A DNA stretch of 63,546 nucleotides, counting the filler, from Lenisia limosa (Eukaryota > Protista > Breviatea), in NCBI GenBank assembly GCA_001655205.1. It is 14 parts of 14 records of this genome, joined end to end, with 100 filler letters (N's around TTAATTAATTAA, not from the genome) between each part and the next. Parts side by side here need not be neighbours in the genome. Positions count along the whole stretch, not along the records: positions 17,628 to 22,940 come from LPNZ01001543.1; 13 more parts are not named here. One strand, written 5' to 3'. Shown here in pieces: positions 19,361 through 22,628 of this stretch; the first letter of the stretch is position 1; the number at the start of each line of letters is the position of its first letter. A program made the translations under genes and the position numbers. The notes under the pieces are model-generated. The model did no database searches. It was given only the letters and a program-made list of their open reading frames with translations, and was not told the DNA's origin.

Positions 19361-22300
19361 AACATGAGAGTCAACTACAATTTTAGTTAGTCTCAGAATT
19401 TCTCGACAGAGATGAAATGCATTACCAAAACGGGATTTTTTCCGTTCCTTGGTTGTTAATGTTTTCACAAATTAAAAATGAATTCAAAACCAGGCTTTAA
19501 ATTGAAATTATAATCTAAATGTAGGTAATTGAGATTCTTCCTGTGAATGAGTAGATTTAGCATATTGTATCCTTGTCTACACACCTAAAAGCATTGATTA
19601 AATATCGAAATAGAGAGAAATCCAACTCTGCTCCATACATTTGTCCCCCCCCCCCCCTTTTTTTTNNNNNNNNNNNNNNNNNNNNNNNNNNNNNNNNNNN
19701 NNNNNNNNNNNNNTTTGTAATAATTCGATCAGTACGAAGAAATACTATTTGTCAATAAAAAGAAAATTCCTGACAAACTCTAAAAATGAACTAATAAACT
19801 AGAAAATAGAGAAAAAATGTTTTTGAGCAATATGGAATTGGCAGTGGTTTTCCTGGTGGTGGGAGCCTTTGTTCCTGGCCCTAACAATTTTTTAATATCG
19901 AAGCCAAAAAACGTCTAAAATTGGAACAACCTCGGAAGTCGGGGAAAATGGGCATTAATGACGCTATTTCATACCCTGTAGAATTATCGAAGGGTCTTTT
20001 TAATTACTTAAATACACAATCAAAAAAAGACTGAATAAGAATGGAGGTTGCAACACCACTTGCATACGGCTGTTTCAAATGCTTCAAAACTTTAGTGATG
20101 CAAGGTGAGCTAAGTTCATTGTGAAAATCATATTTCTGCTGTGGTTCGACTGTCTCTCAAACATGTAGAATTGGACCTTCCTGTTAATGAAAGTTTGAAG
20201 TGGTAAGAGCAACGAGATAAGATCTACAAGGAAGAAGAGAGAAGAAGTTAAGGAGAAAAGAAATGTAGTGAGAACGATGAAGAGAAAGGCAAGTGTTGAA
20301 AGAATGAAAAAGAGCAAGGGTATTGATACCAGTTATGGAGAAGAAGAGGTCATTGTGCAGGCCATACCCTGTTGATCAGTGAAGTATGGTATTTTCTATT
20401 ATGTCTATGAGTGGGTTTCTGTTCTGGAATGTAGTATATGTGGTGTCACTAAGCCAAAAGAGTGAACAAAAAAAGTGGAATGTACTAACAACCTATTCAA
20501 ACCGAGCACGAACAGCATGAACCAGAGGAGCTGGCGTAGGAGATCTTGAAAAAAGTCCGAGGGCTTCACTAAGGGTGTGATAGATTACAAACCGCATCTC
20601 CTTACTCGATAAGGTCGGTACGGTTACGACACCATCTCAAACCTCTCAGAAAATCTCAAAAGGGCAAACGTATTCCGACGCAGGGCGCTCTTCTGGGAAA
20701 GCACAGAGTCAGTAGAGTCTAAATCAGATTAGAGAGCAGCAGAAGGTGCGATGAGAGAAGAAACCTAAATTAAGTACCATTATCTATCAATTTCTGCGAC
20801 TGAAAGATGGAAGAGGAACATCTCTAATAAGATCTTGAATTTTAAAAAAAATAAAAAATGAAAAAAGCTCAATTACAAGGGTAACTACATATCCTCGAGA
20901 ATAAGGTGGTCACGAAGACACCTGTAATCAAGTCGCCGTCGCCTCACTTAGCCTTTTCTGGTGCAGTGAATAAGTCTCGAAGATTTTAACAGTATTTAAA
21001 ATAGGGCAAGAGGGGTAGAAAAAGGATAATTTAGAACCAAGAATCAATCACTGCTGAAAGTTGTTGAGCGAGTTAGGCTGAGGGTAAGAAGCAATCCCAT
21101 TCAGACTGCATTTTCACCACATTCGTGGCTCATCTGATTGAGGGTATCCTCTAATTCGTTAGAATGGACATTTTAGTAAATACTATTGAGAAGATGGGCA
21201 TCCTTGTATTGTTAAGCTGTTTTCAGAGATCCATAAGCAGATGGATTGGATATTTTTTTCTTTTGAAGAGGTTTTCAATACATCGTTTCTTTTCACTGCT
21301 TAATAATTATATCTTACAATAATAATCAATTTGGACAGACAGTAAAAGAGAGAAATCGGGAAAATGTGAAAGTTCACTCAAAAAGACAAATGAGAGATCA
21401 GTTTCTCTTCCTTTCATTTTTTGAAACAAGTAATAACAACTACAAGACTAGACGCCAAAAAATGTTGTACATCTCGCTCTTAGGAAATTCATTTTTAGAA
21501 ATCGATAAAAATGTCAATTTAATAGTAAATTGTACAGATATCAAATCAAGAGGGGTGGGGATAGGAGGGGGTTTGTAACAATATGGCGGTGAACCTACTT
21601 AAGTGCTTGAGGATTTTCCATTGTTTATGGATATGGAAATATGACAAAATGTTACGCAAAACATCATTGAAAGGTAAGCCAACCTGTAATCCTGCTTCCA
21701 CCCAATCTAGCTCAGTTGATTGAAAAAATTTGGTCGCAGATAGAGTTTTAAATAAATAACGTTTCACCATTGACTTTGGCTTCTTTGAATGTAACTCATT
21801 TAAAACCCAACATTTGAGCAACTTTTGATAAGAAACGCGAACCTCAATAAAGAAAAGCTACACACTTTAACTGGTTGACCCTGAGGACAGTGTTCTTGGT
21901 ACCAAGATGAAACAAGAGGGATATCCTGTGCACGACGTGTACGCCCTGTTCTTTGGTTAAATGGTTTTGGAGTCCAAATGAGAAGAAGTCCGGCCATTGT
22001 ATTGTTAGAATAAAGAGGACAACGGCAAAAAAATGCCAAATAAAAAGAAAAAGAAAAACTTCCAAATTAGAAACTTTGTTTCTAAAGTTGAATTCATCTT
22101 CCCCATCATTCAGATCAATATCTTGTAATAATATCTAAAAAAAACTATCTAACTCTTTGACAATTCTTTCTTTATAAACAATAGGATTAATAACAGGATC
22201 ATAATAAAATGCAGGTAATTCAGGGTCATCACACTTAACACCAACTAAATGTGGAGAATGGTAAATGGCTACATGAAAAATGACATCAACAAGTTTGAAC

Positions 22301-22628
22301 TGATCTCGGTCTACTATTGTAAACATTGGGAAAGGCAATTTTATACTCAGAACGAATCTGGTGTCGAACAATAATCTTATCAACATCATTAAATTCATTC
22401 CAATCGTCATCGACATCAACCATTCCTCTAAACAGGGGTTCAAATTTTGGACCACCAGGAATGGCAAGGGATAAAGCCAAAAAATTAATCAAGAAAACTA
22501 ACCTTCGCGGTAAAAAAGGATTTACTATCAAAAAGATAAAAATAATTGGAATCCGTAATATCAGACAATAGCTGCGATGCAATTCTATGCAAATTGATCA
22601 TTATTGGAACTGATAATCTCCATTTTCT
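19361..22628 (-). pseudogene. PRP8: PRP8 (U5 snRNP) N-terminal-region fragment with micro-introns; ends after ..VVDSHV
   Basis: Spliced translation: [41 protein letters not shown]|[71 protein letters not shown]|[24 protein letters not shown]|[31 protein letters not shown]|[20 protein letters not shown]. No further PRP8 exon is seen down to the contig end, so it is either a truncated copy or continues beyond a long intron. Confidence 0.9.
20100..21420 (-). mobile_element. degenerate non-LTR retrotransposon (LINE) relic inside the 2.1 kb PRP8 intron
   Basis: Stop-riddled translation resembles an APE endonuclease (ETDLSFVFLSE; NIQSICLWI..LTIQG; NELEDTLNQ..AV*MG) followed by RT-like spacer (TLALFHSFNTCL). 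Similarity judged by eye only. Confidence 0.4.

Follow-up and report, generated by a model that had tools for sequence, protein, structure and literature searches.

The window analyzed here is a stretch of 63,546 nucleotides (nt) from the genome assembly of Lenisia limosa (GCA_001655205.1). One piece of it, positions 17628-22940 (record LPNZ01001543.1), carries part of PRP8, the gene for Prp8, on its minus strand. The coding sequence is broken by six interruptions of only 22-27 nt (micro-introns hereafter), all of which start with GT and three of which end in TG. We consider it probable, at roughly 60%, that this is a working PRP8 whose messenger RNA (mRNA) requires the removal of the three GT-TG micro-introns. 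Removal at TG would be needed because only that join yields the conserved protein. The short interruptions are most likely spliceosomal introns, and the piece most likely comprises exons for about 346 residues of a working PRP8, namely the N-terminal domain plus PROCN as far as profile position 168. Introns shorter than 30 nt are already known, and so are GT-TG sites, as rarities, in humans. In the literature we found no description of constitutive GT-TG micro-introns.

The Prp8 fragment and its interruptions

A first-pass annotation had placed six tiny interruptions in the gene, and our direct read of the minus strand agreed with it in coordinates, lengths and ends for all six. Together with one GT..AG intron of 2099 positions they make seven interruptions. 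Once these are removed, eight exons give a stop-free Prp8 reading of 346 residues that corresponds to about residues 224-605 of human PRPF8. The parts of the gene are listed below in the order of transcription; a slash marks the place of an intron.

22627-22940, minus strand: upstream intron, 3' part, with a pyrimidine-rich canonical acceptor (TTGTTTCAG) at 22627
22503-22626, minus strand: exon 1, Prp8 similarity from ..RKWRLS, last residue aligned with human PRPF8 residue 267
22478-22502, minus strand: micro-intron 1, 25 nt, GT..TG, 3' end TTTTTTG, phase 0 (K/A), A at positions 17-18 from the 5' end
22498-22525, minus strand: alternative intron overlapping micro-intron 1, 28 nt, GT..AG, in frame
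22291-22477, minus strand: exon 2, human residues 268-327
22269-22290, minus strand: micro-intron 2, 22 nt, GT..AG, phase 1
22162-22268, minus strand: exon 3, Prp8 similarity by tblastn
22135-22161, minus strand: micro-intron 3, 27 nt, GT..AG, divisible by three, with an in-frame TAG
22060-22134, minus strand: exon 4, acidic variable linker (ILLQDIDLNDGEDEF..NLE)
22037-22059, minus strand: micro-intron 4, 23 nt, GT..TG, 3' end TTATTTG, A at position 19
21866-22036, minus strand: exon 5, PROCN positions 2-48, ending at human residue 442
21843-21865, minus strand: micro-intron 5, 23 nt, GT..AG, phase 0 (K/V)
21684-21842, minus strand: exon 6, PROCN positions 49-101, starting at human residue 443
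19585-21683, minus strand: large intron, GT..AG, CAG/GTTGGC ... GCTTTTAG/GTG, 2099 positions including an N gap
19491-19584, minus strand: exon 7, PROCN positions 102-132
19468-19490, minus strand: micro-intron 6, 23 nt, GT..TG, 3' end TAATTTG, phase 1, A at positions 18-19
19362-19467, minus strand: exon 8, PROCN positions 134-168, 3' end uncertain by a few bases

Prp8 chains of solved structures (PDB) match the gene exon by exon with E values of 1e-12 to 1e-21, and the human residues in these matches are consecutive across exons (224-267 and 268-327, 388-442 and 443-497). The reading-frame segment 22503-22646 ends at human residue 267 and 22291-22477 covers residues 268-327; in the same way, segment 21866-22036 ends at residue 442 and 21641-21842 begins at 443. 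The annotation had also held that the joins regenerate Prp8, and they do: residues 267 and 268 as well as 442 and 443 come to lie next to each other, and the removal of 19468-19490 restores LKPVKTLTT, whose conserved V is written by the codon that micro-intron 6 splits into G and TG. Exons 5-8 match the Pfam PROCN profile with a score above the curated cut-off. The profile runs unbroken over three junctions; it lacks position 133 alone, which corresponds to the codon that 19468-19490 divides. Micro-intron 3 lies within a variable linker, and its ends are not fixed by homology; it is the one micro-intron with a length divisible by three, and it contains the in-frame stop noted above.

In local tblastn searches with two full or long Prp8 proteins (P0014 and P0001), similarity was confined to the equivalent of P0014 residues 241-606, and no other significant Prp8 similarity was found on either strand of the piece. 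This includes the sequence upstream of exon 1 (to 22940) and the sequence below exon 8 down to 17628. At 18867-18890, DGIIHCFS weakly resembles DGLQYCFA (E about 18), most likely by chance. The N-terminal domain and then PROCN stand on the piece in the correct order; none of the RT-like, linker, endonuclease-like, RNase H-like and Jab1/MPN domains is on the piece, whose scaffold ends in repeats inside introns, and these domains may be located on other scaffolds. The exon following exon 8 (..YRLGNVDAFQLADG..) is likewise not on the piece, and the donor of exon 8 has two options a few bases apart (19362-19372), GTTACG after ..DSH or GTAGGT after ..DSHVT. Prp8 generally helps to position the 3' splice site, which tells us nothing about the N-terminal fragment found here. 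An Rfam scan of the piece gave no match.

The piece is AT-rich (GC 32-40%), and all glutamine codons of the reading are CAA or CAG, giving no sign of a ciliate-type code. Over the whole region the reading shares 64-69% identity with its best sampled Prp8 relatives and 64% with a fish Prp8, and its signature residues resemble those of protists, fungi and plants rather than those of animals; the presumption of an animal parasite was rejected. A multiple alignment of the exon pieces is imperfect for exon 6. In a maximum-likelihood tree of 16 taxa, few of them labelled, the sequence fell in a polytomy with a terminal branch of 0.54. Among 1.84 billion representative proteins no entry with more than 80% identity was found, and none from this organism. 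The same outcome was obtained with exon 2 placed within a 103-amino-acid reference (candidates of 57-180 amino acids) and with a profile of P0001 residues 245-600 plus the exons (candidates of 196-623 amino acids); exon 5 alone as a query in protein collections returned no candidates.

TG boundaries and canonical alternatives

For each TG junction we listed all surrounding deletions of 10-170 nt, whatever their end bases, after which the exon downstream is again read in frame and free of stops, and we scored the products against five Prp8 proteins. At junctions 1 and 6 the top deletions were 22478-22502 and 19468-19490, barring equivalent shifts by 1-2 nt, and the sole pair of ends common to the two junctions was GT..TG. 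Invariant residues and consecutive PROCN positions pin two of the TG boundaries to within 1-2 bases. For junctions 4 and 6 the enumeration yielded no canonical GT/GC..AG solution. At junction 4, a frame change is required between 22066 and about 22020, an interval with one GT and no AG, and the number of in-frame, stop-free GT/GC..AG solutions among the enumerated deletions was zero. The 5' end of micro-intron 4 is the less certain one, as there is a 38-nt GT..TG variant that starts from 22074 and has the identical TG end.

Junction 1 does offer a canonical choice, the 28-nt GT..AG intron at 22498-22525. It scores 180 versus 230 for the TG model and writes IFLINFL instead of the conserved SKSFFTAK. 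This agrees with the first-pass claim that none of the AGs close by keeps the conserved residues, with the nuance that an in-frame AG exists and loses SKSFFTAK. For all three TG introns, no GT/GC-AG alternative would retain the conserved residues.

One might suppose that the TG introns are retained or poorly spliced, or that junction 1 uses the 28-nt GT-AG intron. In that case most transcripts of the locus would be out of frame, and only a minority of them, or a second, more divergent locus, would supply working Prp8. The in-frame canonical alternative at junction 1 fits this idea. It is also favored by the fact that no junction-spanning RNA was obtained and by the inefficient splicing of tiny introns in microsporidia and mikrocytids (PMC13644364, PMC10245619). 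We nevertheless regard it as unlikely. It leaves junctions 4 and 6 without any canonical solution, and SKSFFTAK and LKPVKTLTT are intact and coded flush with the TG ends, an arrangement that is sensible only if the joins are used. Moreover, a DNA sequencing run of the organism holds no contig of at least 88% identity over the exons besides the locus itself, and thus no second copy at this level of identity.

The same DNA run speaks to the correctness of the TG letters. A re-assembled Logan contig of 2358 nt covers 20556-22913 at a depth of 44 with no differing letters and no gaps, and a second one of 1921 nt covers 18005-19637 and 19714-19933 at a depth of 33, again with no differing letters. 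The first-pass annotation had asked for a read check against base-call errors, and these contigs, at depths of 33-44, read TG at all three sites and list no variant at any splice site. The reads may be those behind the assembly itself; the comparison excludes assembly error and low-coverage miscalls and is not an independent sample. Errors of sequencing or assembly are in our opinion close to negligible as an explanation of the TG ends. The short scaffold, its N gap and the adjoining homopolymers could raise such a suspicion, yet the re-assembly matches without gaps over all three sites, and a systematic read error at three separate sites is implausible.

The N gap itself (19666-19713) lies inside the 2.1 kb intron, and one contig spans it with 68 letters in place of 76 window positions, which puts the true length of the large intron about 8 nt below 2099. 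The gap has no bearing on the reading frame because it is intronic and because both of its sides are continuous in one contig. A C12-T8 homopolymer at 19638-19665 directly abuts it.

Working gene or decaying copy

A different explanation takes the piece for a PRP8 copy that is partial, without function or disabled not long ago, whose introns were once GT-AG throughout and three of whose acceptors mutated from AG to TG. Some features fit. Only residues of about 224-605 are present, there are no further exons in 1.7 kb downstream and 0.3 kb upstream, and the fragment sits between the arms of a high-copy inverted repeat. Like pseudogene fragments, it is a partial gene on a short, repeat-bounded scaffold with non-consensus splice sites.

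The coding sequence argues against decay. Across 13 divergent Prp8 proteins, 78 columns reach a conservation of at least 90%, and the reading keeps 76 of them, the exceptions being a D to G and a T to S change. There is no stop or frameshift in 1038 coding bases, and the introns are retained. In a simulation of neutral decay, the three changes among 24 splice-dinucleotide bases correspond to about 0.125 per site, a rate at which 1038 nt stayed free of stops in about 0.1% of cases. By our own arithmetic, the pattern of three hits, all at position -2 and all to T, has a probability of about 4e-4. Decay would have to combine these three A-to-T hits at -2, with none at the 18 other splice-dinucleotide bases, with the intact frame (about 4e-4 times about 0.001). 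Unlike pseudogene fragments, then, the sequence has no stop, frameshift or radical change, it is transcribed (see below), and its defects amount to one base in three acceptors. The first-pass argument that pseudogene decay is unlikely was borne out by the 76 of 78 conserved columns and by the probability of about 0.001 for a stop-free frame at the needed rate. Taking the features that fit into account, we rate a disabled copy as decidedly unlikely.

Its truncation also has another source. The two arms of the inverted repeat are as follows.

18000-18034, strand not assigned: inverted-repeat arm, 35 nt, 97% complementary to 22893-22927
22893-22927, strand not assigned: second inverted-repeat arm, high-copy, with the assembly ending 13 nt past it

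The arms lie 4.86 kb apart and bracket the gene fragment, and the upstream intron at 22627-22940 runs off the end of the piece through the high-copy repeat. In the DNA run, word depth is about 4000 in the bin of 18000-18034 and about 12800 at 22893-22927, versus 33-44 elsewhere. Many contigs diverge on either side of the repeat arm, which has hundreds of copies. The arm does not belong to the gene; it is the conserved core of a dispersed high-copy family, possibly the terminal repeats of a small transposon. The gene is truncated at both scaffold ends because assemblies break at high-copy repeats inside long introns. A gene-capturing transposon was considered and set aside, as the other copies of the arm diverge on both sides and number in the hundreds.

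Parts of the large intron are repeated as well. Segments 19764-19941, 20220-20369 and 20476-20653 are moderately repeated (depth 118-274). Among the variant copies in the DNA run is one with 16 differences in which 127 nt (20369 to 20497) are missing. In the poly(A) RNA run described below, related non-identical copies are seen at 19894-19944 and 20525-20585. On the plus strand, about 20200-20340 is a purine-rich (GAA/GAG) tract.

A poly(A) RNA run made from this organism within the same study contained a fraction of 0.30 of 106 sampled 31-mers in 21640-22700 (about 32) and 0.10 of 335 sampled 31-mers in 19714-22940 (about 33). Nearly all of the words held by the RNA fall in the exon-dense kilobase and almost none in 1.9 kb of intron. 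The PRP8 locus is transcribed, with the large intron missing from the RNA words, a picture that is mRNA-like and unlike contaminating DNA. The exact exon words should stem from this locus because no other copy of at least 88% identity over the exons is present in the DNA run, and the lack of a near-identical parent copy also counts against a disabled copy.

Further evidence comes from intron positions in a distant genome. We compared the fragment with a GC-rich, unannotated eukaryotic assembly, GCA_006365075.1 (locus L001/L005; L005 is on contig VFQQ010016950.1). It has canonical GT-AG introns exactly at FITAK/SLN, PVK/VRVSYQ and GLQ/V, where they agree in position and phase with TG intron 1, AG intron 5 and the large intron of the fragment. 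At the K/A position this genome has a GT-AG intron of 355 nt, and the introns on VFQQ010016950.1 lie at about 1406-1760, at 2951-3170 and from 3330 onwards. Judging by this coincidence, the three intron positions (K/A, K/V and Q/V) are ancient. Intron 2 lies about 10 nt from the nearest intron of that genome, which has a further intron shortly after ..VDANVQF, near the end of exon 8 in the window. P0038 had been tried as a comparator for short introns and was dropped, being an ordinary annotated gene model on an NCBI chromosome record of 26.5 Mb.

Shared positions also bear on the idea that the interruptions are removed without a spliceosome, by developmental DNA elimination as in ciliates or by translational bypass. 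The shortest internal eliminated sequences of ciliates overlap the range of 22-27 nt. In size, T-richness and in-frame stop the micro-introns are also similar to the tiny introns known from Nyctotherus and Paramecium (PMC2633312). All six interruptions start with GT, however, and none is bounded by TA..TA. No DNA form without the micro-introns or the 2.1 kb segment was seen in the DNA run, where depth is uniform, three of the positions coincide with canonical spliceosomal introns elsewhere, and the CAA and CAG glutamines show no ciliate-type code. We consider removal outside the spliceosome very improbable. The large intron on its own was also considered as a ciliate-type eliminated sequence and rejected on the same ground, as no DNA form lacks the 2.1 kb segment.

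Several points weigh against our view that this is a working PRP8 spliced at TG. The piece carries about 15% of the gene, too small a part to identify the locus as the only or the working PRP8. Micro-intron 4 (22037-22059) lies in the variable linker, where its boundary is not fixed by homology, and the position of intron 6 is not shared with GCA_006365075.1, the one distant genome examined. The 5' sites (GTT, GTC and GTG at +3) are weak compared with the usual GTA/GTR consensus. With regard to the RNA, the word share of 30% is below both the 64% expected of fully covered, spliced mRNA and the roughly 95% expected if the micro-introns are retained, and cannot separate the two. There was no junction-spanning RNA contig either: three contigs could be placed, all on repeats of the large intron, and a filter for conserved sequence is the probable cause. 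Exact-pattern scans of metagenome contigs (Joint Genome Institute, JGI) for junctions 1 and 6, spliced or unspliced, found nothing. Finally, solved spliceosome structures show the 3' AG being read by pairing, with the G of the 5' end and with the branch adenosine as its partners. In solved post-catalytic spliceosomes the partner of the branch adenosine is the adenine at -2, which a TG at positions -2/-1 does not offer, and efficient constitutive use of such a site would be unusual.

Micro-intron class, proposed splicing and known systems

The fragment contains two classes of introns. The long ones (at least 294 nt, and about 2.1 kb) have pyrimidine-rich CAG or TAG acceptors; the others are T-rich and 22-27 nt long, with lengths of 25, 22, 27, 23, 23 and 23 nt (median 23). 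T makes up 58% of the micro-introns versus 34% of the exons. Five of the micro-intron lengths are not divisible by three, and the sixth has its in-frame TAG; with their narrow length range the six belong to the class of ultra-short introns (under 30 nt). All six, like the 2.1 kb intron, start with GT; their 5' hexamers are GTTAGT, GTTGAT, GTCAAA, GTTTTT, GTGTGT and GTTTTG. None of the six resembles the extended U12 consensus RTATCCTT, and a U12-type origin was discarded. AG is found at the ends of 22269-22290, 22135-22161, 21843-21865 and 19585-21683. At 22478-22502, 22037-22059 and 19468-19490 the end is TG, a departure from the AG of U2-type introns. Every micro-intron has an A 16-19 nt from its 5' end, followed by 4-11 nt to its 3' end. 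Introns 2 and 5 have a TG two or three bases upstream of their AG, the use of which would add a residue or break the frame.

These features suggest how TG could serve as an acceptor. We propose that the major spliceosome removes the micro-introns, probably with the A that lies 16-19 nt from their 5' end as branch point. With only 4-11 nt from branch to end, the second step would reach no more than a very narrow window. An AG within this window would be taken, as in introns 2 and 5, where the upstream TG is skipped, and the G after a run of T would be used when an AG is absent. We thus infer both splicing at TG and a rule based on a window of distance. The broader form of this proposal is more tentative: introns of about 23 nt might be defined by length throughout the lineage, as a distance from the 5' site and the branch adenosine, with the second step taking TG if there is no AG, and a sizeable fraction of them might be constitutive GT-TG introns. 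We hold this to be possible, with the odds somewhat against it.

Ultra-short introns are known from several lineages. Those of Nyctotherus ovalis measure 21-29 nt and those of Paramecium 20-33 nt (PMC2633312), myxobolid myxozoans (22-27 nt) and Dicyema have them too (PMC13644364, PMC6543705), and even shorter ones occur in chlorarachniophyte nucleomorphs (18-21 nt), mikrocytids (16-17 nt) and heterotrich ciliates (15-16 nt) (PMC10245619). The micro-introns of the fragment share with them a narrow class of lengths (22-27 nt), T-richness, a GT start, an A at a fixed distance from the 5' end, an in-frame stop in the intron divisible by three, and the ancient age of some positions. In ciliates, the tiny introns of Nyctotherus and Paramecium likewise contain an in-frame stop when they are divisible by three (PMC2633312). 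In animal introns below 30 nt (myxobolids and Dicyema) the conserved A lies farther from the 3' end as length grows, and the distance from the A to the 3' end rises with length in the fragment, too (PMC13644364). Unlike known ultra-short introns, half of the micro-introns of the fragment lack a 3' AG, and position +3 is mostly T instead of A. Furthermore, unlike in the lineages with ultra-short introns, micro-introns stand beside introns of hundreds to thousands of bases within one gene. The reading is 64-69% identical to every sampled Prp8, and neither a ciliate-type code nor DNA elimination was seen here; we assign the sequence to none of the tiny-intron lineages.

Human TG sites occur in long introns, mostly as alternative acceptors with a normal AG only a few bases away. 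In the fragment, by contrast, an essential gene would have three tiny introns for which TG is the sole workable acceptor, used constitutively. What the two have in common is that introns with other features of the U2 type start with GT and end in the dinucleotide TG. Among the non-AG acceptors of human U2-type introns, TG has the best documentation, and it is nonetheless rare (PMC4176328); GNAS and TSPYL2 are the examples of human U2-type GT-TG introns that this paper cites from Szafranski et al., 2007.

The micro-introns may also be set beside genomes with relaxed splice sites. Oikopleura, Fritillaria, dinoflagellates and Euglena have a major spliceosome that tolerates many non-GT-AG sites. 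Their departures mostly concern the 5' site or take the form of GA-AG, GC-AG, GG-AG and AG-AC, and the introns in question are not 22-27 nt long. TG acceptors are not known to be a hallmark of these appendicularian, dinoflagellate and Euglena genomes.

The 3' AG is among the most constant signals of eukaryotic gene expression, and TG is otherwise almost never used. If the splicing proposed here is true, the lineage would offer a natural experiment on how the second step chooses its site when an intron barely exceeds the path through the active site, and would show how far distance can substitute for sequence as a signal. The reliance of PRP8 on three TG introns would then indicate that the relaxed rule is efficient and not a tolerated defect. 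There is a practical side as well. Annotation that admits GT-AG and GC-AG introns only, with a minimum of about 30 nt, would break or mis-model such genes, and junction 1 illustrates how: a predictor limited to GT-AG would likely pick 22498-22525 and write IFLINFL.

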